A stretch of DNA of 64,000 nucleotides, taken from positions 5,186,784 to 5,250,783 of the forward strand of contig CM121341.1 of assembly GCA_051530055.1 (NCBI GenBank), given 5' to 3'. The first letter of the stretch is position 1; each line of letters opens with the position of its first letter. The notes under the pieces are model-generated. The model made no database searches. It was not told where the DNA came from and saw only the letters and a program-made list of their open reading frames with translations. The stretch is from Neoechinorhynchus agilis. Lineage: Eukaryota; Animalia; Acanthocephala. Positions 29,104-58,872 of the stretch are shown in pieces. The translations under genes and the position numbers were made by a program.

Positions 29104-29149
29104 TCTCTATCGTCTTAACAGCTTTTTGGAACGTTACTAGTGAACTTTT

Positions 29150-29560: not shown

Positions 29561-29929
29561 AGATTTGTTCTTATTTAACTGTTTGGGAAAACAATACTGA
29601 ATATGAACCGATGGAAAATGCAAACTATACCCAAGTTCTTCAAATTCGTTTCAAGCAGATTAACGTATATCACAGCCATTCCAAGGGGAGATTAAGCTTT
29701 CTGGCAAACGTAAACTACTGAAACTAAACTACATCAGTCGTAAAAAGTCTTGAAAAATGGGTTCCTTGGTAAGGGACAAAAGTACAAACCCTACAGTAAA
29801 TTCTTTTCTATAAATTTCGAACAAGGAATTCTGAGAATGAGTTACCTTTGTAAGTTAATAGATTCCACCCTCCATCTATTCTCAATACCGGTTCCTTACC
29901 CAGAAGTCGTACTATTTCGCCATTGGTCC

Positions 29930-30240
29930 GATGCCGGTTCTTCAAATCCTTTGTTAAATGTCTTTTCATAGAAGTCGATGGCCATTAATGTAAATACGGG
30001 CGGTTGCGATCGAGTTGTGTGGTACCCCTCGACCGCCATTAATTCGCAAATCCAGGGTTGATTACACTGTCCATTCGATTTAAAATAATTTTTTTACGGT
30101 ACGCTATTCTTGCACCGCACATTTGACGATCCAATACGAGTCCCGATTAATAAACCTCCCGAATCCTACCTCCTGGAAAAGGTTCAGATATTTCATTGGG
30201 AGAAACGATATCCGATCTAAATTTATATTCTCAGCTTACG
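29930..30240 (-). pseudogene. TREH: Trehalase fragment, variant B (copy 1)
   Basis: Reverse complement of 45750-46075: LFPGGRIREV..RDSYW, GFVINGGRGYHTTRSQPPVF. Confidence 0.75.
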
Positions 30241-30559
30241 CCCTGCACAATTGATTATTGACATCATAACAGCCGAAATTATATCGCCGTGATCATTAAA
30301 AGCCTCCTGTACTTCGTAGGAATATTGGTGGCATTGATATCAGCAATCAAAAACATAAGGACGATGAATTGAATGCCTGATGATCGCGTCTAATGTTTGA
30401 CCTTTAACAAACGTGGTCATCATGATTGAACATGGCAACACGTTCACGCAACGCTGTGGTGATCATTGAAGAAGACCAACGCATTGGTCAAAAATTCCGA
30501 TTAATTCCTAAATGAATATCTACACAAAAAGAGAAGTCCGGGGCGACTCGAAAATTTGA

Positions 30560-31270
30560 GTTGGGATGAGTGATTGGTAATGATAGAAATGAGTTTAGAG
30601 TTGAGATCTTGAATGGATCGAAGTAAAGGTAGAGAGATAATTATTTACTTGCTTCGGGAAAAAGAGAGTATTTCACGTGGAAGGGCTGGGAGATTGACCT
30701 TTGTGGTTATTCGGGCGCCGGTGGAGTTATACGTAATCAAAGAAACTGGGAAGTCGCTGATTCTTCGTGTTTTGGGATGGGGGAGATATTCGTGGGTGTT
30801 CGCTAAAAGTGACGGGTTACATTGGAAAAGATGAGATCTGAGTTAAGTTTGTAGGAACGGTGGAAAGATTTTGTAATGAGTTTTTATGTGGATAGATACG
30901 AACAGAAAGTTGTGAGGAGTCTGTGTCTCCTGTTAAGAACGAGGGAAGCTACGAGTGGTGAAATAAAAGTAACTTTGAGGATACGAGGTCTCGGGTTAAA
31001 TTGATTTTTGGAGGGAATACGCATAACAGTTGATGGGAAGGAATAGTAAAGTGAATGTCGGGGGAAAGGAGTTGACCGATACGAAGGAATTTGTTGCGGT
31101 TGTGTGTATCAGTGGCGACAGGATCTGTAAAGGAGGCTCCTGGCTTTTCAGAAATAAATGTGGTGCGATTTATATCCTAGAGAGAGGAGTGCATGACACG
31201 ATGGGTCGAATTCCGGGCACCGAGGGATGATGGGTGGGGTGGAGAAGGCGTATCATCACAGAAATGAATC
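30560..31270 (-). mobile_element. Degenerate Penelope-like RT relic (copy 1)
   Basis: Mirror of 43490-44200; see that entry. Confidence 0.45.
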
Positions 31271-32686
31271 GGAGGGTCGAATGATTTTGATGGTGTTCGT
31301 GTCAACCTTATATCCTTATAATTAGTTGTTCTCCCTTTTCCTTTTTTTCATTCGTTCCAATGTTTTTCGTCGACCTTTTGTTCAACCGTAGCTTTCTTAG
31401 TAGTTACTTCAGCTAAATCGCTTTCGCTTTCCGGGTGAAGACCTAAACAATAATTCTAATCACATTCCCCGAAACCTCACATATCGATCCCAGTTCGTAA
31501 ACCTTCAACCTCTCCAACATTGGTATTTCGTCTATGAAAGTAGTTTGAAATACTACTTTAAAAGTTTTTTGGTTGTGTGTTAAATTGGCCACATCGAAGT
31601 TTGGGTTTACTCTATTTTTAGATTGGAAGAGTGAAGTGCCTGGGTTTTGAGCCGATCTCAACGCTTCTCAAAGTGCAATTCAATCTCTCGCTCAAAGAAT
31701 CAACAAAAAAAGAAGAGCGAGTCATGAACTTTGTTGAAATCCATCAGGTTGCTGAAATATGTGAATGTCCAAAGGTTCTCCAAAAAAGTCAGAAATAATC
31801 TTTAAATAAGTCATTGACAATTAGGAGAGCCGGATTTTTTTGTTAGGATTTCAACTTGTACTCAAATAGTCGTTATGTTGCTTTCACACCGTAAACCTTA
31901 AGAGAGCGTTAAAACTCTTTATTCTGTGGTCTAAAACTCTTGATGGATTTACGACAAGGCTTTAGCAAATGCTTTTGTTTAAAAGCTTAAAATCGTAATC
32001 CAAGTTCATAAAATCACAAAACGAAGCGTTTAATGTCGATCTAACACAATCGAGACGAAAAACCATTAAAAAAATGTAAAATATATTAATTGATTATTAA
32101 GCAAAACTGCGTATAAAGACGATAATTCTTAAGACCAAAAAAAATTGCGCCTCCAACTTCGCCTTATTTTGTAATAAATCAAATCCATTTCGGTCAATCA
32201 TCAAAAGCGAAAAATGCAATAGAAAATTTCGAATAATTTGCAAACGACATAAAAACAAAGTATTTTAACTGGCGGTGTTTAGTGAAGTAAAAAATTTAAC
32301 AAAAATGATTCAGTCGAGCGAAGACGACTATATCTTGCCGAGCAAAAGAAAGTCTCGAGAAAAAAAATCAAGACAATGCCCGGTACGGAAAAATACACAG
32401 AAAGTGAAGCAAATCCAAAAGTAACTCCGTCAGAAAGTCTTGCAAAGGATACAAAAGTTTCGGGTGGTCTACAGGCCAAAAAACGTTCATATCAAAGGCA
32501 TAACTCGAAGAATCTGAGTGTACGGAACTTCCGACGGTTACCCAAGACACAAAGAGACCAAAGATTACAACGAAGACGAAGCAAAGCCGAAAGCGAGTCT
32601 CAAAACCTAGACTGGAGCCAAATCCGCCAGAAACAATTGAAAATTCAGGCGACTTCGATCAAACGGCATTTCCCAGGGAGCTAAAA

Positions 32687-33232
32687 ATGGGTTCCAAACG
32701 TCCAAGAAAATCGGCAGAAGTAAAAGAGGACTTAAGCCATGACGGCAAACGACAAAAGATGACGACGACCACGAAGCCAAGCCCTAAGCAAATCCCAGAA
32801 CCCCATTCAGAATCAAATGCTCCAGAGGTTATAATCATAGCGGAGGAATCCATGGAGTCGAAGGCAAATAAACTTGAAAGTTTTCAAATAAATGCTGAGC
32901 TGCCGAAGTCCCAGCCTCAAATACTAATAATTAATGTAAAAGAAACAAACATTTCGACGGATTTGGATAGAACGACATTTAAAAGCGACCTTAAAATCGG
33001 TTCTAAACGTGCCAGAGAATCGACAGAATTAAAACAAGATTCAATCCACGACGGCAAACGACTTAAGGTTGCATCGAAGCTGACGAAGCCGAGCTGGAAG
33101 CGAATTCCAACACCTCATCCGAAATTAAATGCGCCAGAGGTTATAATCCAATCTGACGATTCGGGAGAGTCGAAGGCAAATCAAGGCGAAAGTTCCAAAA
33201 AAAATCCGCAACAACCGAAGCCTCAATCCTAA
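32687..33232 (+). CDS. C-terminal-only form of the amplified orphan protein (two SIM-like repeats)
   Basis: 181-aa ORF from MGSKRPRK. Homology to the full gene starts ~32312 but is frameshifted upstream; the 5' half is replaced by the P block. Confidence 0.45.
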   Translation: MGSKRPRKSAEVKEDLSHDGKRQKMTTTTKPSPKQIPEPHSESNAPEVIIIAEESMESKANKLESFQINAELPKSQPQILIINVKETNISTDLDRTTFKSDLKIGSKRARESTELKQDSIHDGKRLKVASKLTKPSWKRIPTPHPKLNAPEVIIQSDDSGESKANQGESSKKNPQQPKPQS

Positions 33233-34114
33233 ATCAAAAGGACAAAATAAATGAAACAAACGGCATTTTTCGGCGACCAAATTTTTTTTTAAAACGGCCA
33301 TGAAGCCAACGGCAGATAAAGATTCTAAGCAGTTAAAGTCCCCTTCTGAGTTTGCAGCAAAACGCAGTAGCAGTTGAAACACCAAAGTGTTCAATTGGCA
33401 AATATTGTTCAGGAGTCTGGCATCAAATCGATCAATCAAATTCAAGAAGCATCAGGAAAGAAGGGTCCTTTGGTTAACAAAGAAGAGCAAATTTGGAACT
33501 ACGAATAAACCTTTATTACTTAGTGAAAGTATTTTTTAAATGATTATTTAGTTAATAAATCTTATTAGTTATTTAGTAAATGTTAAAAAGAGAGATGTTC
33601 AAGTTGGGAGGGGCATCAAAACCGGGAATAATCTTCTTGAAATGACGCCAGAAAAAAAGTTTTGGGCCATTATAACACGAAATTTCCAAATCATTGGTCG
33701 ACGATTCTCCCTGCAGAATGAATACTTTCTTCAGATTGGCGAAAAAGGACAATTACATAAATTTCAAAAATAAATCTTTTTTTAAAGTACACGACAATTT
33801 CGGGTTCATAAAATATTTCGAAAATTTAATAAATAGCAATCATTAAAGGGTCACGTGATCACGTTTTGTGACTAATTATCAATAACCAATATTTTTCCGA
33901 CAGCAAAAGCACAAACACAAAGAAAACGTACTTCTAATTAAATACAAGAAAATAAATATTGATTGCGGATAATATTTGTGCAACAAACTGATTTCAAGCT
34001 TTCCCGTTCCCCTCTCGTTAAAGCGCTTCACCTTAATCGTATCGATAACAACGAGCAACTTAGCATCAAAACATCTCCAAGAATTTCCACCGGTAAGTTA
34101 AAAATCCGATCGGT

Positions 34115-34798
34115 TTAAGCACTTTCCACATCTTCACGAAGGCTCCCTTCAATTCCCGGCGGTAAGGGTAGAAATGAATCGAACATTTCAGAACAAAGAT
34201 CCACCATAATTTGTCTTGTACTTTCAGGGGCTTCGGCGATGAACTTCGCTGGAATTCCTCCGAAAATACAATAGGGAGGGACGCAAGTATCAGCAGTTAG
34301 AAGGCTGTTTGGTAGAAGAATGCTACAATCCTTAAGGATCGAGCGCTTCTCACAAACGGAATTGTGGCCTAGAATTAAGAAAATGATGTGTTTTCTAGAG
34401 AAATCAACATGTAAACTTGCCGATCCGTACACAGGAACCAACTTGATTGCATTTAAGAACGCAATCATCTTCCACGATCGTATAGTCGCCAATCGATAGT
34501 TTTGAGAACGAATAAGAGGACGATGCGCGAGTAAAGAAGGGTTGGAGAATGCAGCTTCGTCCGAAATGACAGTATTTTCCAACTCGAATTGGAGCGAGAT
34601 CGCCTCTGAACACACAATTTTGTTGAATTATTACTCGACCGGTTAGAATGATATTTTGACTTCCTGCCATTAAAGATTTCTTTTCTTGAATACTCACACG
34701 TCCGTCGAAGGTTGTGTGAGTATTCACGTACAAACCTTATTTCCTGTGCTGGTTTCGAAGTATTCGGCGGGTCGAAAATATTGCTCACAGACTTCCAT
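34115..34798 (-). CDS. DCTN5: Dynactin subunit 5 (p25), copy 1; two introns; junction-1 TAA issue
   Basis: EYFETSTGNK..AGSQNIILTGRVII..VFRGDLAPIRVGKYC..IGDYTIVEDDCV..ILKDC..VPPYCIFGGIPAKF. Confidence 0.85.
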
Positions 34799-34845
34799 CT
34801 AGAACATATTTTTTAGAGGTGCCAATTCCTTTTAACATTTTAGAT

Positions 34846-36255
34846 ATGCAAAATCAAGATTTTAACTACAAAACCTCAAAGAACCACTCTGAAACATCGT
34901 CCACGTCTCAAGCTGCATCTGAACACAAGGAGATTCTAAAAGCAGACAAGTCAACCGAAATCGAACACGAAGCATTCGAAACTTACGCCAAAGGAACAGA
35001 AGTACAATTTTATTTCAAGGAAGAGTCCAGAGATGAATGGTGGTCCGATGGAAAAGGTCATTCTGGACGGCGTCGAATACCAAGCAACCATTACACCTCC
35101 AAATGCTCGTGAAATGCACTTTGAATCTCGGGTAGCAGCTCACAACCGCCCACGAAAGCCCCCACCAGAACCTGAAGGAGGACTTCGTCTTCGAAGTGGT
35201 AGAAAAATGTTGAGTGCCATCGAGGTATTCAGGCAAGAGGAAGCAAAATCGAATTGTCCAAAGTCAACGAGATCGAAGGGTAGTACCAACGTTACGTCCA
35301 ATCGAAAACGAGTAAAAGGAGAACCCGAAGACGACTATGTCTTGCCGACCAAAAGAAAGATTCTCGAGAAAAAATCAAGACAATGCCCCGTACGGAAAAA
35401 TACAGAAAGTGAAGCAAATCCAAAAGTAACTCCGTCAGAAAGTCTTGCAAAGGATACAAAAGTTTCGGGTGGTCTACAGGCCAAAAAACGTTCAATATCA
35501 AAGGCACAACTCGAAGAATCTGAGTGTTCGGAACTTCCGATGGTTACCCAAGACATAAAGAGACCAAAGATTACAACGAAGACGAAGCCAAGCCGAAAGC
35601 GAGTCTCAAAACCTAAAATGGAACCAAATCCGCCAGAACACGAAAATTCAGGCACTGATCAAACGGCATTTCCCAGGGACAAAAAATGGGTTCCAAACGT
35701 CCAAAAAAATCGGCAGAAGTAAAAGAGGACTTAAGCCATGATGGCAAACGACAAAAGACACGACGACCACGAAGCCAAGCCCTAAGCAAATCTTAGAACC
35801 TCATTCAAAATCAAATGCGCCAGAGGTTATAATAATAGCGGAGGAATCCATGGAGTCGAAGGCAAATAAAGATGAAAGTTCTCAAATAAATCCAGAGCTG
35901 CCGAAGTCCAAGTCTCAAATACAAATGATTAATGTAAAGGAAACAAACATTTCGACGGATTTGGATAGAACGACATTAAAAAGCGACCTTAAAATCGGTT
36001 CTAAACGTGCCAGAGAATCTGACAGAATTAAAACAAGACTCAATCCACGACGGCAAACGACTTAAGGTTGGATCGAAGCTGACGAAGCCGAGCCGGAAGC
36101 GAATTCCAACACCTCATCCGAAACGCTTAAATGCGCCAGAGGTTAACCTATCTGACGATTCGGGGGAGTCGAAGGCAAATCAAGGCGAAAGTTCCCAAAT
36201 AAATCCGCAACAACCGAAGCTCCTCAATCCTAAATCAAAAGGACAAAATAAATGA
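34846..36255 (+). pseudogene. Amplified orphan gene, copy 1, several frameshifts
   Basis: Colinear with 37868-39262 but has small indels near 35040, 35640, 35690, 35760, 36020 and 36120. These may be consensus errors. Confidence 0.6.
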
Positions 36256-37136
36256 AACAGACGGCATTTTCCGGCGACCTAAATTTTTTTTTAAAACGTT
36301 TTTTTTATTAAAACGGCGATGAAACCAACGGCAGATAAAGATTCTAAGCAGTTAAAGTCCCCTTCTGAGTTTGCAGCAAAACGCAATAGCGGTTGAGATA
36401 AACACCAAAGTGTTCAATAGGCAAATTTTGTTCAGGAGTTTGGCATCAAATCGATCAATATAATTCAAGGAGCACTAGGAGAGAAGGGTCCTTTGGTTAA
36501 CAAAGAAGAGCAAATTTGGAACTACGAATAAACCTTTATTATTTAGTGAAAGTATTTTTTAAATGATTATTTGGTTAATAAATCCTATCAGAAATTCAGT
36601 AAATGAAAAAAGGAGAGATGTTCAAGTTGGGAGGGGATCAAAACCGGGAATAATCTTCTCGAAATGACGCCAGAAAAAAAGTTTTGGGCCATTATAACAC
36701 GAAATTTCCAAATCATTTGTCGACGATTCTCCCTGCAGAATGAATACTTTCTTCAGATTGGCGAAAAAGGACAATTACATAAATTTCGAAAATAAATCTT
36801 TTTTTAAAGTACACGACAATTTCGAGTTCATAAAATATTTCAAAAATTTAATAAATAGCAATCATTAAAGGGTCACGTGATCACGTTTTGTGACTAATTA
36901 TCAATAACCAATATTTTTCCGACAACAAAAGCACAAACACAAAGAAAACGTATTTCTAATTAAATACAAGAAAATAAATATTGATTGCTGATAATATTTG
37001 TGCAACAAACTGATTTCAAGCTTTCCCGTTCCCCTCTCGTTAAAGCGCTTCACCTTAATCGTATCGATAACAACGAGCAACTTAGCATCAAAACATCTCC
37101 AAGAATTTCCACCGGTAAGTTAAAAATCCGATCGGT

Positions 37137-37820
37137 TTAAGCATTTTCCACATCTTCACGAAGGCTCCCTTCAATTCCCGGCGGTAAGGGTAGAAATGAA
37201 TCGAACATTTCAGAACAAAGATCCACCATAATTTGTCTTGTACTTTCAGGGGCTTCGGCGATGAACTTCGCTGGAATTCCTCCGAAAATACAAATAGGAG
37301 GGACGCAAGTATCAGCAGTTAGAAGGCTGTTTGGTAGAAGAATGCTACAATCCTTAAGGATCGAGCGCTTCTCACAAACGGAATTGTGGCCTAGAATTAA
37401 GAAAATGATGTGTTTTCTAGAGAAATCAACATGTAAACTTGCCGATCCGTACACAGGAACCAACTTGATTGCATTTAAGAACGCAATCATCTTCCACGAT
37501 CGTATAGTCGCCAATCGATAGTTTTGAGAACGAATAAGAGGACGATGCGCGAGTAAAGAAGGGTTGGAGAATGCAACTTCGTCCGAAATGACAGTATTTT
37601 CCAACTCGAATAGGAGCGAGATCGCCTCTGAACACACAATTTTGTTGAATTATTACTCGACCAGTTAGAATGATATTTTGACTTCCTGCCATTAAAGATT
37701 TCTTTTCTTGAATACTCACACGTCCGTCGAAGGTTGTGTGAGTATTCACGTACAAACCTTGTTTCCTGTGCTGGTTTCGAAGTATTCGGCGGGTCGAAAA
37801 TATTGCTCACAGATTTCCAT
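37137..37820 (-). CDS. DCTN5: Dynactin subunit 5 (p25), copy 2
   Basis: Near-identical to copy 1, 3022 bp downstream. Confidence 0.85.
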
Positions 37821-37867
37821 CTAGAACATATTTTTTAGAGGTGCCAATTCCTTTTAACATTTTAGAT

Positions 37868-39262
37868 ATGCAAAATCAAGATTTTAACGACAAAACCTCA
37901 AAGAACCACTCTGAAACATCGTCCACGTCTCAAGCTGCATCTGAACACAAAGAGATTCTAAAAGAAGACAAGTCAACCGAAATCGAACGCGAAGCATTCG
38001 AAACTTACGCCAAAGGAACAGAAGTACAATTTTATTTCAAGGAAGAGTCCAGAGATGAATGCGGGGTCCGGACGGGAAAGGTCATTCTGGACGGCGTCGA
38101 ATACCAAGCAACCATTACACATCCAAATGCTCGTGAAATGCACTTTGAATCTCGGGTAGCAGCTCACAACCGCCCACGAAAGCCCCCACCAGAACCTGAA
38201 GGAGGACTTCGTCTTCGAAGTGGTAGAAAAATGTTGAGTGCCATCGAGGTATTCAGGCAAGAGGAAGCAAAATCGAATTGTCCAAAGTCAACGAGATCGA
38301 AGGGTAGTACCAACGTTACGTCCAATCGAAAACGAGTAAAAGGAGAACCCGAAGACGACTATGTCTTGCCGACCAAGAGAAAGATTCTCGAGAAAAAATC
38401 AAGACAATGCCCCATACGGAAAAATACAGAAAGTGAAGCAAATCCAAAAGTAACTCCGTCAGAAAGTCTTGCAAAGGATACAAAAGTTTCGGGTGGTCTA
38501 CAGGCCAAAAAACGTTCAATATCAAAGGCACAACTCGAAGAATCTGAGTGTTCGGAACTTCCGATGGTTACCCAAGACATAAAGAGACCAAAGATTACAA
38601 CGAAGACGAAGCCAAGCCGAAAGCGAGTCTCAAAACCTAAAATGGAACCAAATCCGCCAGAAACAATTGAAAATTCAGGGGACTTCGATCAAACGGCATT
38701 TCCCAGGGAGCTAAAAATGGGTTCCAAACGTCCAAAAAAATCGGCAGAAGTAAAAGAGGACTTAAGCCATGATGGCAAACGACAAAAGATGACGACGACC
38801 ACGAAGCCAAGCCCTAAGCAAATGCCAGAGCCAAATTCAGAATCAAATGCCCCAGAGGTTATAATAATAGCGGAGGAATCCATGGAGTCGAAGGCAAATA
38901 AAGATGAAAGTTATCAAATAAATCCTGAACTGCCGAAGTCCCAGTCTCAAATACAAATGATTAATGTAAAAGAAACAAACATTTCGACGGATTTGGATAG
39001 AACGACATTAAAAAGCGACCTTAAAATCGGTTCTAAACGTGCCAGAGAATCGACAGAATTAAAACAAGACTCAATCCACGACGGCAAACGACTTAAGGTT
39101 GGATCGAAGCTGACGAAGCCGAGCCGGAAGCGAATTCCAACACCTCATCCAAAATTAAATGCGCCCGAGGTTATAATCCTATCTGACGATTCGGGAGAGT
39201 CGAAGGCAAATCAAGGCGAAAGTTTCCAAATAAATCCGCAACAACCGAAGCCTCAATCCTAA
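37868..39262 (+). CDS. Amplified orphan protein, intact 464-aa copy: disordered K/E/S-rich, GLRLRSGR motif, NLS-like and SIM-like repeats
   Basis: Single open frame from ATG after ttttag-at; internal duplication of ~103-aa period GSKR..HDGKR..PEVII. Confidence 0.8.
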   Translation: MQNQDFNDKTSKNHSETSSTSQAASEHKEILKEDKSTEIEREAFETYAKGTEVQFYFKEESRDECGVRTGKVILDGVEYQATITHPNAREMHFESRVAAHNRPRKPPPEPEGGLRLRSGRKMLSAIEVFRQEEAKSNCPKSTRSKGSTNVTSNRKRVKGEPEDDYVLPTKRKILEKKSRQCPIRKNTESEANPKVTPSESLAKDTKVSGGLQAKKRSISKAQLEESECSELPMVTQDIKRPKITTKTKPSRKRVSKPKMEPNPPETIENSGDFDQTAFPRELKMGSKRPKKSAEVKEDLSHDGKRQKMTTTTKPSPKQMPEPNSESNAPEVIIIAEESMESKANKDESYQINPELPKSQSQIQMINVKETNISTDLDRTTLKSDLKIGSKRARESTELKQDSIHDGKRLKVGSKLTKPSRKRIPTPHPKLNAPEVIILSDDSGESKANQGESFQINPQQPKPQS

Positions 39263-39583
39263 ATCAAAAGGACAAAAATAAGTGAAAAAAAAGGCATTTT
39301 CCGGCGACCTAAAAAATGATTAAAACGGCGATGAAGCCAACGGCAGATAAAGATTCAAAGCAGTTAAAGTCGTCCCTCTGAGTCTGCAGCAAAACGCAGT
39401 AGCGGTTGAAATAAACACCAAAGTGTTCAATTGGCAAATATTGTTCAGGAGTTTGGTATCAAAGCGATCAATCAAATTCAAGGAGCACTAGGAGAGAAGG
39501 GTCCTTTGGTTAACAAAGAAGAGCAAATTTGGAACTACGAATAAACCTTTATTATTTAGTGAAAGTATTTTTTAAATGATTAT

Positions 39584-40177
39584 TTAGGGAGTTACTTTTG
39601 GATTTGCTTCACTTTCTGTATTTTTCCGTGCGGGGCATTGTCTTGATTTTTTCTCGAGAATCTTTCTTTTGGTCGGCAAGACATAGTCGTCTTCGGGTTC
39701 TCCTTTTACTCGTTTGCGATTGGACGTAACGTTGGCACTACCCTTCGATCTCGTTGACTTTGGACAATTCAATTTTGCTTCCTCTTGCCTGAATACCTCG
39801 ATGGCACTCAACATTTTTCTACCACTTCGAAGACGAAGTCCTCCTTCAGGTTCTGGTGGGGGCTTTCGTGGGCGGTTGTGAGCTGCTACCCGAGATTCAA
39901 AGTGCATTTCACGAGCATTTGGATGTGTAATGGTTGCTTGGTATTCGACGCCGTCCAGAATGACCTTTCCCGTCCGGACCCCGCATTCATCTCTGGACTC
40001 TTCCTTGAAATAAAATTGTACTTCTGTTCCTTTGGCGTAAGTTTCGAGTTCTTCGTGTTCGATTTCGGTTGACTTGTCTTCTTTTAGAATCTCTTTGTGT
40101 TCAGATGCAGCTTGAGACGTGGACGATGTTTCAGAGTCGTTCTTTGAGGTTTTGTCGTTAAAATCTTGATTTTGCAT
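39584..40177 (-). CDS. N-terminal-only (197-aa) form of the orphan protein at the inversion junction
   Basis: Matches the first 197 aa. A TAA is created by the junction aaagtaactccc-taa at 39584-39586. Confidence 0.5.
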   Translation of the reverse strand: MQNQDFNDKTSKNDSETSSTSQAASEHKEILKEDKSTEIEHEELETYAKGTEVQFYFKEESRDECGVRTGKVILDGVEYQATITHPNAREMHFESRVAAHNRPRKPPPEPEGGLRLRSGRKMLSAIEVFRQEEAKLNCPKSTRSKGSANVTSNRKRVKGEPEDDYVLPTKRKILEKKSRQCPARKNTESEANPKVTP

Positions 40178-40224
40178 ATCTAAAATGTTAAAAGGAATTG
40201 GCACCTCTAAAAAATATGTTCTAG

Positions 40225-45579: not shown

Positions 45580-45749
45580 TAGACGCGATCATCAGGCATT
45601 CAATTCATCGTCCTTATGTTTTTGATTGCTGATATCAATGCCACCAATATTCCTACGAAGTACAGGAGGCTTTTAATGATCACGGCGATATAATTTCGGC
45701 TGTTATGATGTCAATAATCAATTGTGCAGGGCGTAAGTTGAGAATATAA

Positions 45750-48008: not shown

Positions 48009-48888
48009 ATCAAAAGGACAAAATAAATGAAACAAACGGCATTTTTCGGCGACCAAATTTTTTTTTAAAACGGCCATGAAGCCAACGGCAGATAAAGATT
48101 CTAAGCAGTTAAAGTCCCCTTCTGAGTTTGCAGCAAAACGCAGTAGCAGTTGAAACACCAAAGTGTTCAATTGGCAAATATTGTTCAGGAGTCTGGCATC
48201 AAATCGATCAATCAAATTCAAGAAGCATCAGGAAAGAAGGGTCCTTTGGTTAACAAAGAAGAGCAAATTTGGAACTACGAATAAACCTTTATTACTTAGT
48301 GAAAGTATTTTTTAAATGATTATTTAGTTAATAAATCTTATTAGTTATTTAGTAAATGTTAAAAAGAGAGATGTTCAAGTTGGGAGGGGATCAAAACCGG
48401 GATAATCTTCTCGAAATGACGCCAGAAAAAAAGTTTTGGGCCATTATAACACGAAATTTCCAAATCATTTGTCGACGATTCCCCTGCAGAATGAATACTT
48501 TCTTCAGATTGGCGAAAAAGGACAATTACATAAATTTCGAAAATAAATCTTTTTTTAAAGTACACGACAATTTCGAGTTCATAAAATATTTCAAAAATTT
48601 AATAAATAGCAATCATTAAAGGGACACGTGATCACGTTTTGTGACTAATTATCAATAACTAATATTTTTCCGACAGCAAAAGCACAAACACAAAGAAAAA
48701 CGTACTTCTAATTAAATACAAGAAAATAAATATTGATTGTGGATAATATTTGTGCAACAAACTGATTTCAAGCTTTCCCGTTCCCCTCTCGTTAAAGCGC
48801 TTCACCTTAATCGTATCGATAACAACGAGCAACTTAGCATCAAAACATCTCCAAGAATTTCCACCGGTAAGTTAAAAATCCGATCGGT

Positions 48889-49572
48889 TTAAGCACTTTC
48901 CACATCTTCACGAAGGCTCCCTTCAATTCCCGGCGGTAAGGGTAGAAATGAATCGAACATTTCAGAACAAAGATCCACCATAATTTGTCTTGTACTTTCA
49001 GGGGCTTCGGCGATGAACTTCGCTGGAATTCCTCCGAAAATACAATAGGGAGGGACGCAAGTATCAGCAGTTAGAAGGCTGTTTGGTAGAAGAATGCTAC
49101 AATCCTTAAGGATCGAGCGCTTCTCACAAACGGAATTGTGGCCTAGAATTAAGAAAATGATGTGTTTTCTAGAGAAATCAACATGTAAACTTGCCGATCC
49201 GTACACAGGAACCAACTTGATTGCATTTAAGAACGCAATCATCTTCCACGATCGTATAGTCGCCAATCGATAGTTTTGAGAACGAATAAGAGGACGATGC
49301 GCGAGTAAAGAAGGGTTGGAGAATGCAACTTCGTCCGAAATGACAGTATTTTCCAACTCGAATTGGAGCGAGATCGCCTCTGAACACACAATTTTGTTGA
49401 ATTATTACTCGACCAGTTAGAATGATATTTTGACTTCCTGCCATTAAAGATTTCTTTTCTTGAATACTCACACGTCCGTCGAAGGTTGTGTGAGTATTCA
49501 CGTACAAACCTTGTTTCCTGTGCTGGTTTCGAAGTATTCGGCGGGTCGAAAATATTGCTCACAGACTTCCAT
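48889..49572 (-). CDS. DCTN5: Dynactin subunit 5 (p25), copy 4
   Basis: Near-identical to the other copies. Confidence 0.85.
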
Positions 49573-49619
49573 CTAGAACATATTTTTTAGAGGTGCCAAT
49601 TCCTTTTAACATTTTAGAT

Positions 49620-50870
49620 ATGCAAAATCAAGATTTTAACGACAAAACCTCAAAGAACCACTCTGAAACATCGTCCACGTCTCAAGCTGCATCTGAACAC
49701 AAAGAGATTCTAAAAGAAGACAAGTCAACCGAAATCGAACACGAAGAACTCGAAACTTACGCCAAAGGAACAGAAGTACAATTTTATTTCAAGGAAGAGT
49801 CCAGAGATGAATGCGGGGTCCGGACGGGAAAGGTCATTCTGGACGGCGTCGAATACCAAGCAACCATTACACATCCAAATGCTCGTGAAATGCACTTTGA
49901 ATCTCGGGTAGCAGCTCACAACCGCCCACGAAAGCCCCCACCAGAACCTGAAGGAGGACTTCGTCTTCGAAGTGGTAGAAAAATGTTGAGTGCCATCGAG
50001 TTATTCAGGCAAGAGGAAGCAAAATTGAATTGTCCAAAGTCAACGAGATCGAAGGGTAGTGCCAACGTTACGTCCAATCGCAAACGAGTAAAAGGAGAAC
50101 CCGAAGACGACTATGTCTTGCCGACCAAAAGAAAGATTCTCGAGAAAAAATCAAGACAATGCCCCGCACGGAAAAATACAGAAAGTGAAGCAAATCCAAA
50201 AGTAACTCCGTCAGAAAGTCTTGCAAAGGATACAAAAATTTCGGGTGGTCGACAGGCCAAAAAACGTTCAATATCAAAGGCACAACTCGAAGAATCTGAG
50301 AGTTCGGAACTTCCGATGGTTACCCAAGACACAAAGAGACCAAAGATTACAACGAAGACGAAGCCAAGCCGAAAGCGAGTCTCAAAACCTAAACTGGAAC
50401 CAAATCCGACAGAAACAATTGAAAATTCAGGCGACTTCGATCAAACGGCATTTCCCAGGGAGCTAAAAATGGGTTCCAAACGTCCAAGAAAATCGGCAGA
50501 AGTAAAAGAGGACTTAAGCCATGATGGCAAACGACAAAAGATGACGACGACCACGAAGCCAAGCCCTAAGCAAATCCCAGAACCCCATTCAGAATCAAAT
50601 GCCCCAGAGGTTATAATAATAGCGGAGGAATCCATGGAGTCGAAGGCAAATAAAGATGAAAGTTTTCAAATAAATGCTGAGCTGCCGAAGTCCCAGTCTC
50701 AAATACAAATGATTAATGTAAAAGAAACAAACATTTCGACGGATTTGGATAGAACGACATTAAAAAGCGACCTTAAAATCGGTTCTAAACGTGCCAGAGA
50801 ATCGACGGAATTAAAACAAGACTCAATCCACGACGGCAAACGACTTAAGGTTGCATCGAAGCTGACGTAG
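49620..50870 (+). CDS. Amplified orphan gene, copy 4; premature TAG removes the second SIM-like motif
   Basis: ctgacg-TAG-ccg at 50868, where other copies read ctgacg-AAG-ccg; the frame continues to 51013. Confidence 0.65.
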   Translation: MQNQDFNDKTSKNHSETSSTSQAASEHKEILKEDKSTEIEHEELETYAKGTEVQFYFKEESRDECGVRTGKVILDGVEYQATITHPNAREMHFESRVAAHNRPRKPPPEPEGGLRLRSGRKMLSAIELFRQEEAKLNCPKSTRSKGSANVTSNRKRVKGEPEDDYVLPTKRKILEKKSRQCPARKNTESEANPKVTPSESLAKDTKISGGRQAKKRSISKAQLEESESSELPMVTQDTKRPKITTKTKPSRKRVSKPKLEPNPTETIENSGDFDQTAFPRELKMGSKRPRKSAEVKEDLSHDGKRQKMTTTTKPSPKQIPEPHSESNAPEVIIIAEESMESKANKDESFQINAELPKSQSQIQMINVKETNISTDLDRTTLKSDLKIGSKRARESTELKQDSIHDGKRLKVASKLT

Positions 50871-51389
50871 CCGAGCCGGAAGCGAATTCCAACACCTCAT
50901 CCAAAATTAAATGCGCCCGAGGTTATAATCCTATCTGACGATTCGGGAGAGTCGAAGGCAAATCAAGGCGAAAGTTCCCAAATAAATCCGCAACAACCGA
51001 AGCCTCAATCCTAAATCAAAAGGACAAAAATAAGTGAAAAAAAAGGCATTTTCCGGCGACCTAAAAAATGATTAAAACGGCGATGAAGCCAACGGCAGAT
51101 AAAGATTCAAAGCAGTTAAAGTCGTCCCTCTGAGTCTGCAGCAAAACGCAGTAGCGGTTGAAATAAACATCAAAGTGTTCAATAGGCAAATATTGTTCAG
51201 GAGTCTGGCATCAAATCGATCAATTAAATTCAAGGAGCACCAGGAGAGAAGGGTCCGTTGGTTAACAAAGAAGAGCAAATTTGGAACTACGAATAAACCT
51301 TTACTATTTAGTGAAAGTATTTTTTAAATGATTATTTAGTTACTAGATCTTAATAAACATTTAGTAAATGATAAAAAGGGTAGAAATAC

Positions 51390-52659
51390 GGAGTTCGACC
51401 ATGTGAAGCACCTTGTTTCGAAAAATCCTTCAGCTTCTCTTCCAAAAGGTCCTCTCGACTTGACTGAGGAGGCTTATCCCTGGATGGCTCCACATTGGTC
51501 GCAGCGTGTGACTAGACGTTGAGGAAACGCGAAGTTCAGTAGACGGTCTTGAAGGCTGAGTCAAAGTCCTTGGCTCGGATGATGAAGCATCCTTACGGCC
51601 TTGAACTTGTGCCCAGGCGATGTATTTTTCGAACGCGTCACATTTCTTTCAATGTGACCAATGGCCGTCGCCATCTCAGTTTGAACAATGTTTTCGAGTC
51701 CTACTGCATTTAGAACTATGATGATCCAGCCAGCAGAAGGCGCATTTTGTCAACTTTGTAGGACAACGTTGCTCCCAGTGACCCCAACACTTACAACTGT
51801 TGCATCGCGAGAAGTGATAATCAGCAAAATTGTAAACATTATCAGCAGTAAATTTGACTACCATAGAATTGAAATAGCACCTCTCCAAAGTCAACGTGTC
51901 CCTGCTCTCGACATTGCCTATCACAATCGCTTTCGGGATCATATTCGCTAATCTGGCCGATTTTAGAAAAAAATAGGATCTTGACGCCCAACTTCCCCTC
52001 GAATTCCCGTTTATCGACTTCATCAATGTCTGGGAATAATCCAAAGACCATAAAGGTTGACTGGTAGCTGGAGTCGGTAATTTAAACACCGGAGAGACCG
52101 TATTTTTTTCTCGTGAATTCTATAAATCCTTCGACGAAACGTCTGCCAATTAACAAAACTCTCAACCTCCAACCGAAATTGGTTGTCGAGCAAATTCTAT
52201 GCACGTCGTCCTTGAACGTTTTGAACCATGGAACCAAGAATCTTCGATGCACCTCCTTCCTCGGGAGTAGCGGATTGGATTGTATGGCCACAGTAAGTGG
52301 CCATCTCTTGGTTGGGACTTCCAAAAGAGAAGAATCGTCCTGGGGTGTACGGGAGTTGGTTTGGGTGCTACGTCTCCGAGAATAGTACTCCGGACCTCCC
52401 GTGGCACAAGAATTCTAAGAGAATTGGGTGGTCGTTTGCCACTCTCCGCCAATGACTGAACATTGGTGTGCATTGTTTTAATATTGACGTTATTGATATT
52501 TTTTTAGTGCATATTGATTTTTTTTAATGTATATCGATTTTTTTTAATACGGTCGCAGTTGCCATGTTGCAAAGTAGTTTTAAAATTACATTAACAAGTT
52601 TGAACCAATGATTCAAACCTTGAAATTCGTCCACTTTTTGTGTGCTGGTGAAGCGGCAG
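51390..52659 (-). mobile_element. Longer copy of the gag-like ORF1 fragment
   Basis: Same zinc-knuckle translation as 44465-45579 and same right junction, with ~155 bp extra on the left. Confidence 0.75.
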
Positions 52660-52829
52660 TAGACGCGATCATCAGGCATTCAATTCATCGTCCTTATGTT
52701 TTTGATTGCTGATATCAATGCCACCAATATTCCTACGAAGTACAGGAGGCTTTTAATGATCACGGCGATATAATTTCGGCTGTTATGATGTCAATAATCA
52801 ATTGTGCAGGGCGTAAGTTGAGAATATAA

Positions 52830-53155
52830 ATTTAGATCGGATATCGTTTCTCCCAATGAAATATCTGAACCTTTTTCCAGGAGGTAGGATTCGGGAGGTT
52901 TATAATCGGGACTCGTATTGGATCGTCAAATGTGCGGTGCAGAATAGCCGATACCGTAAAAAAATTATTTTAAATCGAATGGACAGTGTAATCGACCCTG
53001 GATTTGTGATTAATGGCGGTCGAGGGTACCACACAACTCGATCGCAACCGCCCGTATTTACATTAATGGCCATCGACTTCTATGAAAAGACATTTAACAA
53101 AGGATTTGAAGAACCGGTATCGGAACAATGGCGAAAGAGTACGACTTCTGGGTAA
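52830..53155 (+). pseudogene. TREH: Trehalase fragment, variant B (copy 3)
   Basis: MKYLNLFPGGRIREVYNRDSYW..NGGRGYHTTRSQPP. Confidence 0.75.
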
Positions 53156-54572
53156 GGAACCGGTATTGAGAATAGATGGAGGGTGGAATCTATTAACTTA
53201 CAAAGGTAACTCATTCTCAGAATTCCTTGTTCGAAATTTATAGAAAAGAATTTACTGTTCGGTTTGTACTTTTGTCCCTTACCAAGGAACCCATTTTTCA
53301 AGACTTTTTACGACTGATGTAGTTTAGTTTCAGTAGTTTACGTTTGCCTGAAAGCTCAATCTCCCCTTGGAATGGCTGTGATATACGTTAATCTGCTTGA
53401 AACGAATTTGAAGAACTTGGGTATTAGAAGTCTCAATTGGTTCGGATCCTTCGATGTTTTTGGGTTTACTCTATTTTTAGATTGGAAGAGTGAAGTGCCT
53501 GGGTTTTGAGCCGATCTCAATGCTTCTCAAAGTGCAATTCTTCAATCTCTCGCTCAAAGAATAAACAAAAAAAGAAGAGCGAGTCATGAACTTTGTTGAA
53601 ATCCATCAGGCTGCTGAAATATGTGAATGTCCAAAGGTTCTCCAAAAAAGTCAGAAATAATCTTTAAATAAGTCATTGACAATTAGGAGAGCCGGATTTT
53701 TGTTAGGATTTCCACTTGTACTCAAATAGTCGTTATGTTGCTTTAACACCGTAAACCTTAAGAGAGCGTTAAAACTCTTTATTCTGTGGTCTAAAACTCT
53801 TGATGGATTTACGACAAGGCATTAGCAAATGCTTTTGTTTAAAAGCTTAAAATCGTAATCCGAGTTCATAAAATAATAAAACGAAGCGTTTAATGTCGAT
53901 CTAACACAATCGAGACGAAAAACCATTAAAAAAATGTAAAATATATTAATTGATTATTAAGCAAAACTGCGTATAAAGACGATAATTCTTAAGACCAAAA
54001 TATTGCGCCGCCAACTTCGCCTTATTTTGTAATAAATCAAATCCATTTCGGTCAATCATCAAGAGCGAAAAATGCAATTGAAAATTTCGAATAATTTGCA
54101 AACGACATAAAAACAAAGTATTTTAACTGGCGGTGTTTAATAAAGTAAAAAATTTAACAAAAATGATTCAGTCGAGCGAAGACGACTATATCTTGCCGAG
54201 CAAAAGAAAGTCTCGAGAAAAAAATCAAGACAATGCACCGCACCAAAAAATAAAGAAAGTGAAACAAAACTAAAAGTAACTTCGTCAGAAAGTCTTGCAA
54301 AGGATACAAAGGTTTCGGATGATCGACGCGCAAAAAAAACGTTCAAGGTCAAAGGCACAACTCGAAGAAACTGAGTCTACGGAACTTCCGACGGTTAAAC
54401 AGCCGAGAGAAATAAAGGAAGGAACAACCGAAGACAAAAAAGACAAAAGGTTACAACGAAGACGAAGCAACGCCGCAAGCTAGTCTCAAAACCTAAACTG
54501 GAACAAAATCCGCCAGAAAAAATTGAAAATTCAGGCGACTTCGATCAAACGGCATTTCCCAGGGAGCTAAAA

Positions 54573-55115
54573 ATGGGCTCTAAACGTCCAAGAAAATCGG
54601 CAGAAGTAAAAGAGGACTTAAGCCATGATGGCAAACGACAAAAGATGACGACGACGAAGCCAAGCGCTAAGCAAATCTTAGAACCTCATTCAAAATCAAA
54701 TGCCCCAGAGGTTATAATAATAGCGGAGGAATCCATGGAGTCGAAGGCAAATAAAGATGAAAGTTTTCAAATAAATGCTGAGCTGCCGAAGTCCCAGCCT
54801 CAAATACTAATAATTAATGTAAAAGAAACAAACATTTCGACGGATTTGGATAGAACGACATTTAAAAGCGACCTTAAAATCGGTTCTAAACGTGCCAGAG
54901 AATCGACAGAATTAAAACAAGACTCAATCCACGACGGCAAACGACTAAAGGTTGCATCGAAGCTGACGAAGCCGAGCCGGAAGCGAATTCCAACACCTCA
55001 TCCGAAATTAAATGCGCCCGAGGTTATAATCCTATCTGACGATTCGGGGGAGTCGAAGGCAAATCAAGGCGAAAGTTCCCAAATAAATCCGGAACTACCG
55101 AAAGGAAAAAAATAA
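54573..55115 (+). CDS. C-terminal-only form of the orphan protein (ELPKGKK end)
   Basis: 180-aa ORF from MGSKRPRK. Confidence 0.45.
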   Translation: MGSKRPRKSAEVKEDLSHDGKRQKMTTTKPSAKQILEPHSKSNAPEVIIIAEESMESKANKDESFQINAELPKSQPQILIINVKETNISTDLDRTTFKSDLKIGSKRARESTELKQDSIHDGKRLKVASKLTKPSRKRIPTPHPKLNAPEVIILSDDSGESKANQGESSQINPELPKGKK

Positions 55116-55985
55116 ATGAAACAAACGGCATTTTTCGGCGACTTAAAAAAAATGATTAAAACGGCGATGAAACCAACGGCAGATAAAGATTCGAAGCAGT
55201 AAAAGTCCTTTTCTGAGTCTGCAGCAAAACGCAGTAGTGGTTGAGATAAACACTAAAGTGTTCAATAGGCAAATATTGTTCAGGAGTTTGGCATCAAAGC
55301 GATTAATACAATTCAAGGAGCACTAGGAGAGAAGGGTCCTTTGGTTAACAAAGAAGAGCAAATTTGGAACTACGAATAAACCTTTATTACTTAGTGAAAG
55401 TATTTTTTAAATGATTATTTAGTTAATAAATCTTATTAGTTATTTAGTAAATGTTAAAAAGAGAGATGTTCAAGTTGGGAGGGGCATCAAAACCGGGAAT
55501 AATCTTCTTGAAATGACGCCAGATAAAAAGTTTTGGGCCATTATAACACGAAATTTCCAAATCATTTGTCGACGATTCTCCCTGCAGAATGAATACTTTC
55601 TTCAGATTGGCGAAAAAGGACAATTACATAAATTTCAAAAATAAATCTTTTTTTAAAGTACACGACAATTTCGGGTTCATAAAATATTTCGAAAATTTAA
55701 TAAATAGCAATCATTAAAGGGTCACGTGATCACGTTTTGTGACTAATTATCAATAACCAATATTTTTCCGACAACAAAAGCACAAACACAAAGAAAACGT
55801 ACTTCTAATTAAATACAAGAAAATAAATATTGATTGCGGATAATATTTGTGCAACAAACTGATTTCAAGCTTTCCCGTTCCCCTCTCGTTAAAGCGCTTC
55901 ACCTTAATCGTATCGATAACAACGAGCAACTTAGCATCAAAACATCTCCAAGAATTTCCACCGGTAAGTTAAAAATCCGATCGGT

Positions 55986-56669
55986 TTAAGCATTTTCCAC
56001 ATCTTCACGAAGGCTCCCTTCAATTCCCGGCGGTAAGGGTAGAAATGAATCGAACATTTCAGAACAAAGATCCGCCATAATTTGTCTTGTACTTTCAGGG
56101 GCTTCGGCGATGAACTTCGCTGGAATTCCTCCGAAAATACAATAGGGAGGGACGCAAGTATCAGCAGTTAGAAGGCTGTTTGGTAGAAGAATGCTACAAT
56201 CCTTAAGGATCGAGCGCTTCTCACAAACGGAATTGTGGCCTAGAATTAAGAAAATGATGTGTTTTCTAGAGAAATCAACATGTAAACTTGCCGATCCGTA
56301 CACAGGAACCAACTTGATTGCATTTAAGAACGCAATCATCTTCCACGATCGTATAGTCGCCAATCGATAGTTTTGAGAACGAATAAGAGGACGATGCGCG
56401 AGTAAAGAAGGGTTGGAGAATGCAGCTTCGTCCGAAATGACAGTATTTTCCAACTCGAATTGGAGCGAGATCGCCTCTGAACACACAATTTTGTTGAATT
56501 ATTACTCGACCAGTTAGAATGATATTTTGACTTCCTGCCATTAAAGATTTCTTTTCTTGAATACTCACACGTCCGTCGAAGGTTGTGTGAGTATTCACGT
56601 ACAAACCTTGTTTCCTGTGCTGGTTTCGAAGTATTCGGCGGGTCGAAAATATTGCTCACAGACTTCCAT
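55986..56669 (-). CDS. DCTN5: Dynactin subunit 5 (p25), copy 5
   Basis: Near-identical to the other copies. Confidence 0.85.
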
Positions 56670-56716
56670 CTAGAACATATTTTTTAGAGGTGCCAATTGC
56701 TTTTAACATTTTAGAT

Positions 56717-58130
56717 ATGCAAAATCAAGATTTTAACGATAAAACCTCAAAGAACGACTCTGAAACATCGTCCACGTCTCAAGCTGCATCTGAACACAAA
56801 GAGATTCTAAAAGAAGACAGGTCAACCGAAATCGAACACGAAGAACTCGAAACTTACGCCAAAGGAACAGAAGTACAATTTTATTTCAAGGAAGAGTCCA
56901 GAGATGAATGCGGGGTCCGGACGGGAAAGGTCATTCTGGACGGCGTCGAATACCAAGCAACCATTACACATCCAAATGCTCGTGAAATGCACTTTGAATC
57001 TCGGGTAGCAGCTCACAACCGCCCACGAAAGCCCCCACCAGAACCTGAAGGAGGACTTCGTCTTCGAAGTGGTAGAAAAATGTTGAGTGCCATCGAGGTA
57101 TTCAGGCAAGAGGAAGCAAAATCGAATTGTCCAAAGTCAACGAGATCGAAGGGTAGTACCAACGTTACGTCCAATCGAAAACGAGTAAAAGGAGAACCCG
57201 AAGACGACTATGTCTTGCCGACCAAAAGAAAGATTCTCGAGAAAAAATCAAGACAATGCCCCGTACGGAAAAATACAGAAAGTGAAGCAAATCCAAAAGT
57301 AACTCCGTCAGAAAGTCTTGCAAAGGATACAAAAGTTTCGGGTGGTCGACAGGCCAAAAAACGTTCAATATCAAAGGCACAACTCGAAGAATCTGAGTGT
57401 TCGGAACTTCCGATGGTTACCCAAGACATAAAGAGACCAAAGATTACAACGAAGACGAAGCCAAGCCGAAAGCGAGTCTCAAAACCTAAAATGGAACCAA
57501 ATCCGCCAGAAACAATTGAAAATTCAGGCGACTTCGATCAAACAGCATTTCCCAGGGAGCTAAAAATGGGTTCCAAACGTCCAAGAAAATCGGCAGAAGT
57601 AAAAGAGGACTTAAGCCATGATGGCAAACGACAAAAGATGACGACGACCACGAAGCCAAGCCCTAAGCAAATCTTAGAACCTCATTCAAAATCAAATGCG
57701 CCAGAGGTTATAATCATAGCTGAGGAATCCATGGAGTCGAAGGCAAATAAAGATGAAAGTTATCAAATAAATCCTGAACTGCCGAAGTCCCAGTCTCAAA
57801 TACAAATGATTAATGTAAAAGAAACAAACATTTCGACGGATTTGGATAGAACGACATTTAAAAGCGACCTTAAAATCGGTTCTAAACGTGCCAGAGAATC
57901 GACAGAAGTCAAAGAAGACTCAAATCCACGACGGCAAACGACTTAAGGTTGCATCGAAGCCGACGAAGCCGAGCCGGAAGCGAATTCCAACACCTCATCC
58001 GAAATTAAATGCGCCCGAGGTTATAATCCTATCTGACGATTCGGGAGAGTCGAAGGCAAATCAAGGCGAAAGTTCGCAAATAAATCCGCAACAATCAAGC
58101 CTCAATCCTAAATCAAAAGGACAAAAATAA
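56717..58130 (+). CDS. Amplified orphan gene, copy 5; frameshift near 57920
   Basis: Open to 57946; the remainder continues in another frame (57888-58130). Confidence 0.6.
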
Positions 58131-58872
58131 GTGAAAAAAAAAGCATTTTCCGGCGACCTAAAAAATGATTAAAACGGCGATGAAGCCAACGGCAGATAAA
58201 GATTCAAAGCAGTTAAAGTCGTCCCTCTGAGTCTGCAGCAAAACGCAGTAGCGGTTGAAATAAACATCAAAGTGTTCAATTAGCAAATATTGTTCAGGAG
58301 TCTGGCATCAAATCGATCAATCAAATTCAAGGAGCACCAGGATAGACGGGTCCTTTGGTTAACAAAGAAGAGCAAATTTGGAACTACGAATAAACTTTTA
58401 TTATTTTGTGAAAGTATTTTTTAAATGATTATTTAGAATAAATCTTATAAGTTATTTAGTAAATGTTAAAAAGAGATGTTCAAGTTGGGAGGGGCATTAA
58501 AAGTTGAAAATACATTTCAATAAATGGAGAAGAGTTGGAAACTAAATTCGATGGTTGATAAAGAAGTGGTCACATTTAAGACAGAGTACAGCTAATTGAT
58601 TTCAAGCACTCTAAAAAAAGGATGTTCCTGGACTGTGAAGGTTCGCCTATGATTGGTCATTTTGTAATATATTTTTATCATCGAGAGAAAATCGTAACCT
58701 CTGGAATATATTGATCCCGAGTACAAGGGCTAAACATTATAAAATAGTAGAAACTTTTTTCTGGTGACCGATGAGACGTCCTCTTTCGAAATATCTCAAG
58801 TAAAAATGGGCGAATGTGCAAAAAGCGAATCCGTACATCCACTCACCCATATGGATAATTTAATTTTCCACT

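Follow-up and report, generated by a model that had tools for sequence, protein, structure and literature searches.

Gene arrays that evolve in concert, such as those of the histone, amylase and U2 snRNA genes, are built of head-to-tail units with kilobase periods, carry the mosaics left by gene conversion and differ in copy number between individuals. Ampliconic palindromes, for which the human Y palindromes P1–P8, mouse Slx/Sly and Drosophila Stellate/Dox are well-known examples, combine high-identity inverted arms with arm-to-arm conversion and the co-amplification of neighbouring genes; these sex-linked or drive arrays run to tens to hundreds of copies, or to arms of 10 kb to megabases, and are testis-restricted and fast-evolving. 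The gene considered here, DCTN5, encodes dynactin p25, a pointed-end cargo-adaptor subunit of dynactin with p27, p62 and Arp11 as its partners in the pointed-end complex, and not a part of the kinetochore motor. To our knowledge, DCTN5 is single-copy in most animals, and dynactin subunits are dosage-balanced and almost never amplified. In the present study we analysed a window of 64,000 nt (64 kb) of the acanthocephalan Neoechinorhynchus agilis (contig CM121341.1, positions 5,186,784 to 5,250,783), in which five intact copies of DCTN5 lie in tandem and inverted array together with copies of a second long open reading frame (ORF), referred to below as the partner ORF. We interpret this locus, with a probability of roughly 0.6, as a young, copy-number-variable amplification of p25 that raises its dosage, with gene conversion keeping the copies alike and the partner ORF as a decaying passenger.

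The array shares with the concerted arrays its head-to-tail units of kilobase period, its conversion mosaics, the apparent difference in copy number between individuals and the encoding of one near-identical protein by all copies; it differs from them in amplifying a dynactin subunit and in containing both an inverted arm and another gene that is in decay. With the ampliconic palindromes it has in common the high-identity inverted arms, the conversion between arms and the co-amplified neighbour but, unlike the sex-linked and drive arrays, it comprises only five to six copies, encodes a conservative protein of housekeeping type and has a copy on another chromosome. A literature search found no paper joining ‘dynactin subunit 5’ with ‘tandem duplication’, and the locus is best described as a tandemly amplified gene family, the product of an ordinary event at an unusual gene.

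Self-alignment of the window delimited an amplified block of 28.9 kb composed of few segment types, which are designated by letters in Table 1: e is the DCTN5 unit, f the full partner-ORF unit and d a C-terminal fragment of the partner ORF, whereas a is a piece of ORF1 of a long interspersed nuclear element (LINE), b a piece of a trehalase pseudogene, and c and x are spacers. The core repeat is a 3.0-kb unit in which a three-exon DCTN5 gene stands head-to-head with the lysine/serine/glutamate-rich partner ORF, the two start codons being ~45 nt apart if the partner ORF starts at its first ATG. A higher-order unit of 7.08 kb also holds a partner C-terminal fragment, a spacer, the trehalase pseudogene piece and part of an ORF1-like non-LTR (long terminal repeat) retrotransposon. 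The 3.0-kb tandem (32319-36572 against 35326-39585) has 95% identity and the 7.08-kb tandem (44461-51378 against 51543-58473) has 96%. An inverted repeat spans 16.7 kb between its outer ends, and its arms pair with 96-98% identity in three sections (29627-30395 with 46345-45577, 30307-31298 with 44464-43456, and 31601-35433 with 43409-39588). The tandem and inverted multi-copy amplicon of the preliminary description was thus recovered by self-comparison, with its 16.7-kb inverted repeat and its 3.02-kb and 7.08-kb tandems, and its counts (five DCTN5 copies, four full partner ORFs, one N-terminal piece and four C-terminal fragments) agree with ours. Its term ‘palindrome’ holds for the inverted arms but not for any perfect symmetry: compared with a strict palindrome, which has near-identical arms about a short unique spacer, these arms are gapped and flank an asymmetric 4.15-kb middle (35434-39587) made up of more repeat units, and the inversion junction between positions 39587 and 39588 is blunt and without microhomology. 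Similarly, its statement that all copies are nearly identical applies to the DCTN5 part (98.3-99.5% identity) and the full partner ORFs (97-98%), but not to the C-terminal fragments (89-95%).

The amplification is also evident in DNA reads. We aligned an Illumina whole-genome sequencing (WGS) run, X8, which may or may not be the assembly's own sample, to one unit and its right flank (55450-60800), so that the reads of all copies pile up there. Depth was ~68 over the DCTN5 segment (55450-57239) compared with ~17 over the flank (58493-59566 and 59925-60103), a ratio of 3.9, and it reached 93-124, or 5.3-7 times the flank, over the C-terminal segment of the partner ORF; in addition, the tandem junction from 58461 to 55450 was joined by 19 reads. 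Of the reads, 16-21% had letters private to unit 5, and further paralogous variants occurred at fractions of 0.30-0.49; such fractions, from 0.16 to 0.49, are impossible for a single diploid locus and require more than two copies. The preliminary description had named a single-copy read depth as the sign of an artefact; the depth found and the junction reads exclude a single-copy assembly artefact, whether or not X8 comes from the assembled sample. At six of the 14 positions tested, variant frequencies lay within 0.05 of the prediction from the assembled copies and the rest deviated, the unit-5 private letters at 56820 and 57123-57178 being nearly missing from the reads. The deviating fractions, together with a depth below that of six copies, probably mean either that the sequenced worm carries a somewhat different array, polymorphic in copy number and sequence, or that the assembly contains one unit too many.

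The identification of the amplified gene as DCTN5, proposed from the sequence in the preliminary description, is borne out: this is a bona fide dynactin p25 by its match to Pfam PF21711 and by its gap-free alignment with mammalian p25. With the RNA-supported junctions described below, all five array copies encode an intact protein of 194 aa with 0-3 differences among them. The PF21711 matches (E 3.5e-23 over profile positions 23-113 and E 2.1e-15 over 107-179) both exceed the 40-bit cut-off, and the protein aligns ungapped to residues 26-111 (E 5e-22) and 113-179 (E 5.5e-14) of mammalian DCTN5 (182-aa chain). The N-terminus, GNKVCKKSLMAGSQNIILTGR, presumably matches human p25 residue for residue, and from the sixth residue onwards the alignment with the structure chain shows the same; in the public annotation the protein begins only at Met28 (167 aa). 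In common with the p25 of solved dynactin structures (5ADX, 5AFU and 6F1T), the worm protein has PF21711 along its full length, a gap-free alignment and the hexapeptide pattern of a left-handed beta-helix; it differs from mammalian p25 in having ~40% identity and a 12-residue C-terminal extension, and its gene contains a hairpin intron without GT-AG ends and, in the array copies, also a GC-AG intron. Retroposition was ruled out as the copying mechanism, since every copy retains introns and flanks. Among the six p25 genes, counting the one on the second chromosome described below, there are nine synonymous and five non-synonymous distinct variants and no insertions or deletions (indels), giving a ratio of non-synonymous to synonymous change (omega) of ~0.16 and a synonymous excess with a binomial p value of 0.001. 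These data show that the DCTN5 copies are under purifying selection, and the adaptive or rapid evolution typical of ampliconic families was not observed for them.

To examine expression, we used Logan contigs of two RNA runs (X2 and X3) of whole worms without sex label. That these runs are RNA is apparent from their coverage, in which three short stretches are missing, the intergenic region 58493-58850 is uncovered and SNU13 is heavily covered. Both DCTN5 introns are exactly absent from the RNA contigs of the two runs, and at gene position 377 these contigs read C, as the array does, and lack the letters of the copy on the second chromosome, indicating that array copies are expressed. The p25 genes of the array are therefore transcribed and correctly spliced. 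Intron 1 consists almost entirely of a hairpin with a 12-bp stem, and the adjoining exon bases lengthen the pairing (-26.2 kcal/mol, z = -5.1); its exact removal in the RNA contigs of both runs restores the p25 frame. Two other models of this intron were rejected, as the RNA contigs show a different, frame-preserving junction: a 47-nt GTACGT..CAAG intron, which yields a TAA, and a 56-nt GT-AG intron, which shortens the protein. An N-terminal extension of p25 through an upstream minus-strand exon was likewise ruled out by an in-frame TAG immediately before the ATG. Intron 2 has a GC donor in all five array copies, whereas the equivalent on the second chromosome (10251-10302 of that locus) starts with the consensus GTAAGT; the GC donor is thus a derived state that the array copies share. 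Hairpin-ended non-canonical introns are known from the tunicate Fritillaria borealis; the worm intron 1 likewise lacks GT-AG, is a hairpin over nearly its whole length and must be excised exactly, and here the exact removal is seen directly in RNA contigs, with boundaries CG..AA or AC..AA.

A sixth DCTN5 unit (ACOME3_010149; our locus L001) lies at 6.90 Mb on CM121343.1 (7.8 Mb). Its segments are arranged f-e-d as in the array and are flanked on either side by pieces of the LINE segment; its p25 is intact at 194 aa, and its hairpin intron is identical with that of the array. The divergence of this unit from the array is a mosaic, being 1-3% over DCTN5 and the 5′ part of the partner ORF and ~10% over the 3′ part of the ORF. 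Within the array, a tract of 1513 nt is 100% identical between the inverted copies 39588-41100 and 48697-50209, whereas its surroundings are ~95% identical. The identical tract and the mosaic divergence both indicate that, besides duplication, gene conversion (concerted evolution) has acted. Our searches for a separate divergent DCTN5 gave only the array and the CM121343.1 unit, on contigs of 19.4 and 7.8 Mb, although a paralogue sharing no five-residue words with the query would escape such searches. As no such gene was found, the copies of the array and of CM121343.1 are probably the working p25 genes of the worm and not a neofunctionalised offshoot.

The partner ORF has had a very different fate. 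The full reading of 473 codons survives only in copy O2, in which an N-terminal family domain is accompanied by a basic motif, R-L-R-S-G-R-K, and by a pair of K-rich modules, each ending in PEVII(I/L); O1 is shattered, the L001 copy has an internal stop, and O4 and O5 still exceed 400 codons. Variable sites are spread 46:57:50 over the three codon positions, omega is 0.7-1.0 and there are ~20 indels, so that by these sequence measures the array copies evolve neutrally, in decay and not in adaptation. A word-based search matched the ORF to the N. agilis hypothetical proteins ACOME3_001113 and ACOME3_001114 only. An exhaustive phmmer search of 1.84 billion representative proteins gave four hits, which include the single-copy intronless N. 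agilis paralogues ACOME3_003783 (54%) and ACOME3_006287 (42%), over ~100 residues; the other two are one annotated N. agilis protein and one that is 88% identical over the C-terminal modules, as expected for an array copy. No relative outside N. agilis was present among these 1.84 billion proteins, from which other acanthocephalan proteomes may be absent. The term ‘orphan’ given to this ORF thus stands in so far as it has no relatives outside the species but does not stand in the strict sense, given the two single-copy paralogues within it. These lie in ordinary gene neighbourhoods away from any DCTN5, and they share with the array ORF the N-terminal domain and an R-x-L-R-S/N-G-K/R motif; in the array ORF the C-terminus is replaced, relative to the paralogues, by the two K-rich modules ending PEVIII/PEVIIL. 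On comparison of these sequences, the partner ORF is not a chance ORF. The paralogues (L002:8001-8789 and L003:8001-8765) also share a second motif, SPIERLTC.TSSKI.EMFA, which is absent from the array copies.

The chromatin-binding label that the ORF had been given is weakened, since it draws only on short motifs and the fold search returned no significant match. Pfam gave nothing informative for the ORF, and an ESM Atlas feature search with its domain gave no usable hit. AlphaFold produced an unusable model from the single sequence, with a predicted local distance difference test (pLDDT) score of 51, and from a five-row family alignment a model of three strands and a helix with a pLDDT of 70. 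In a Foldseek comparison with the PDB, the partner model had no significant match (E at least 0.1, template-modelling score at most 0.25, with weak dsRBD- or PUR-like rows), and we claim no fold. Its arginine motif may resemble the LANA-type anchor that docks on the nucleosome acidic patch (H2A-H2B); in a sequence search, the 30-aa basic motif had no match in the PDB even at E 10. A chromatin role for the partner ORF is a guess drawn from its motifs.

The RNA over the 5′ part of the partner ORF lies on the opposite strand. A 51-nt stretch (56807-56857) is missing from every RNA contig that covers this part, and by depth arithmetic no contig retains it. Read on the strand of the ORF, this stretch belongs to conserved coding sequence, whereas on the DCTN5 strand it is a canonical intron; its removal as such indicates that the RNA over this part is antisense to the ORF. 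The intron sits in a non-coding leader, with the in-frame TAG directly ahead of the DCTN5 ATG, and one RNA contig of 2893 nt circles the whole unit and crosses the tandem junction. The antisense RNA comes either from a DCTN5 isoform with a long leader or from transcription that reads through out of the adjacent unit. It is the only RNA detected over the 5′ part. Contrary to the co-amplified functional module that had been suggested, the partner is not a co-selected gene: its omega is neutral, three of its six full-length copies are disrupted and its 5′ RNA is antisense.

How the array arose can be outlined in conditional terms. The 3-kb DCTN5/partner unit would have multiplied by tandem duplication through unequal exchange, with periods of 3.0 kb and 7.08 kb, and one non-homologous fold-back or template-switch event may then have produced the inverted arm with its blunt junction. 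The 7-kb higher-order unit would have taken up pieces of the LINE and the trehalase pseudogene on the way. The likeness of the copies, in an array that probably differs between individuals, would be maintained by gene conversion or by unequal crossing-over, and the array would serve as a multi-copy source of one protein, giving a higher dosage of p25, with the partner gene as a passenger in decay.

Several points weigh against this interpretation. The Logan RNA contigs give neither strand nor quantity; the X8 depth ratio of 3.9 is lower than the six assembled copies, and the single-copy baseline is not fully secure, as bins 60104-60640 have ~2 times the flank depth. With no more than 14 variants the test for selection is a modest one, the searches would have missed a p25 paralogue without shared five-residue words, and the dosage benefit is inferred and not shown. 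In addition, redundant copies could stay intact for some time if they were converted by a single copy under selection. A rival view is that the array is a selectively neutral copy-number variant, produced by recent accidents in a duplication-prone, repeat-rich region and still intact through youth and homogenisation. The low divergence among array units (0.5-1.7%), the apparent difference in copy number between the assembly and the WGS sample, the other, 7.28-kb-spaced duplication of a convertase gene in the window and the transposable-element fragments embedded in the unit are all consistent with such a history, which we consider possible but rather unlikely. Against it stand the synonymous excess in DCTN5 and the lack of indels, when the adjacent ORF with the same history has ~20 indels and unbiased substitutions, and the fact that the older CM121343.1 copy is also intact despite the ~10% divergence of the neighbouring ORF 3′ sequence. 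A far smaller chance attaches to an assembly artefact, in which a single-copy locus was turned into spurious tandem or inverted copies by wrongly joined long reads or by separate placement of its haplotypes. The low X8 ratio, the almost unsupported unit-5 letters at 56820 and 57123-57178 and the possible lack of independence of X8, should it be the source of the assembly, could be brought forward for it, but the depth is about fourfold and not single, the variant fractions demand more than two copies, the tandem junction is crossed by both DNA reads and the 2893-nt RNA contig, and the GenBank annotation has distinct DCTN5 proteins from the same contig; we regard it as extremely improbable.

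A further explanation is that of a conflict-driven germline or sex-linked ampliconic module, in which p25 and a nuclear protein bearing a SUMO-interacting motif bias chromosome movement or segregation. The inverted repeat with ~96-98% arm identity and its gene-conversion tracts would suit such a module; N. agilis has separate sexes, related acanthocephalans are XX/X0 (PMC12239011), and male-biased genes of N. agilis are enriched for microtubule terms according to its genome paper (PMC12690905). The flank depth of ~17, about half of the ceiling of 33x for a run made up wholly of worm reads, might reflect hemizygosity or equally host DNA. However, the copies number only five to six, one unit lies on a second chromosome, p25 evolves conservatively and not rapidly, and the partner is neutral, disrupted in half of its copies and seen only as antisense RNA. 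These are apparently the sole p25 genes, so a housekeeping role is expected of them, and p25 is a cargo adaptor of the pointed end and not part of a kinetochore motor. The genome paper, which describes a draft of 46.2 Mb with 94% in three large scaffolds, does not mention dynactin, sex chromosomes or introns, and its supplement has no dynactin entry (PMC12690905). None of our results ties the array to a sex chromosome or to drive in meiosis, or bears on germline restriction or transmission distortion, and this explanation, which is improbable, is not favoured. Its more specific form, an X-linked or germline conflict module in which copy-variable p25 and a sense–antisense gene for a SUMO-interacting protein steer chromosome or nuclear positioning in X0 gametogenesis, is highly improbable; if true, it would be the first dynactin-based ampliconic drive or suppressor system. 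We retain the selected, dosage-raising amplification of p25 as the preferred interpretation.

Table 1. Positions of the array features in the window (the L001 entry refers to the locus on CM121343.1); a prime marks an inverted segment and a slash the inversion junction
Feature	Position	Strand	Remarks
Whole block	29627-58502	.	order b' x c d e f e f / f'(cut) e' d' c' x' a b c d e f a b c d e f
DCTN5 D1	34115-34798	-	three exons, intact 194-aa p25
DCTN5 D2	37137-37820	-	intact; most diverged array copy (V3I, Y143I)
DCTN5 D3	40225-40908	+	intact; inverted arm
DCTN5 D4	48889-49572	-	intact; protein identical to D1
DCTN5 D5	55986-56669	-	intact (V166A); exons 56669-56600, 56552-56292, 56239-55986
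DCTN5 D5 intron 1	56599-56553	-	47 nt, non-GT-AG hairpin, ends CG..AA or AC..AA
Intron 1 equivalents	40295-40341 (+); 34685-34731; 37707-37753; 49459-49505; L001:9943-9989
DCTN5 D5 intron 2	56291-56240	-	52 nt, GC-AG (GCAAGT donor), spliced
DCTN5-strand intron inside partner ORF	56807-56857	-	51 nt, GTAAGT...TTTTAG, conserved in six of six units
Partner O1	34819-36233	+	several frameshifts, first at nt 221
Partner O2	37841-39262	+	longest intact copy, 473 codons from GTG; first ATG 37868
Partner O4	49593-51014	+	premature stop, 425 codons
Partner O5	56690-58111	+	1-nt insertion at nt 1232, 418 codons
Partner N-terminal piece	39588-40204	-	nt 1-617, cut at inversion junction 39587/39588
Partner C-terminal fragment C1	32319-33232	+	nt 510-1422
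Partner C-terminal fragment C2	41778-42691	-	
Partner C-terminal fragment C3	47097-48008	+	
Partner C-terminal fragment C4	54177-55115	+	
LINE ORF1-like piece (segment a)	44461-45577	-	non-LTR retrotransposon, three CCHC knuckles; second copy 51543-52650
Trehalase pseudogene piece (segment b)	52657-53424	+	Pfam PF01204 positions 121-207; copies 45577-46345 and, inverted, 29627-30395

A piece 93% identical to the LINE segment adjoins the DCTN5 unit on CM121343.1, and Pfam searches with the LINE ORF1-like ORFs and several L001 ORFs gave nothing informative. Immediately to the left of the array, a trehalase fragment (29119-29560, + strand) is better preserved than the b pieces copied within it; no complete trehalase gene was visible in the 64-kb window, and an Rfam search of the whole window returned no family. 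The second segmental duplication (11645-13625 and 18927-20849, 7.28 kb apart) is up to 100% identical over 300 nt. Its copies contain a gene for a furin-like convertase, and the sequence between them includes a non-LTR reverse transcriptase (14977-17115) and an ORF with Thr/Pro-rich repeats. To the right of the array, 59567-59924 and 60641-60800 are high-copy elements with WGS depths of ~27 and ~17 times the flank, and at 59659/59806 more than 1500 reads connect opposite strands, which suggests a fold-back repeat family resembling miniature inverted-repeat transposable elements. Tandem satellites with periods of 176 nt and 84 nt, at 77-2160 and 60898-61876, flank the gene-rich part of the window.

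The locus provides a compact natural case in which tandem duplication, inverted duplication and gene conversion act jointly and in which selection maintains one gene while the adjacent one decays. Of most immediate use is a by-product of the analysis: public RNA data document the exact removal of an unconventional hairpin intron. That p25 alone should be kept in six intact, selected copies raises the question of whether there is a role for extra p25 outside the dynactin complex; alternatively, many copies may be needed to make enough protein, for example because intron 1 is a hairpin without GT-AG ends and intron 2 a weak GC-AG intron.

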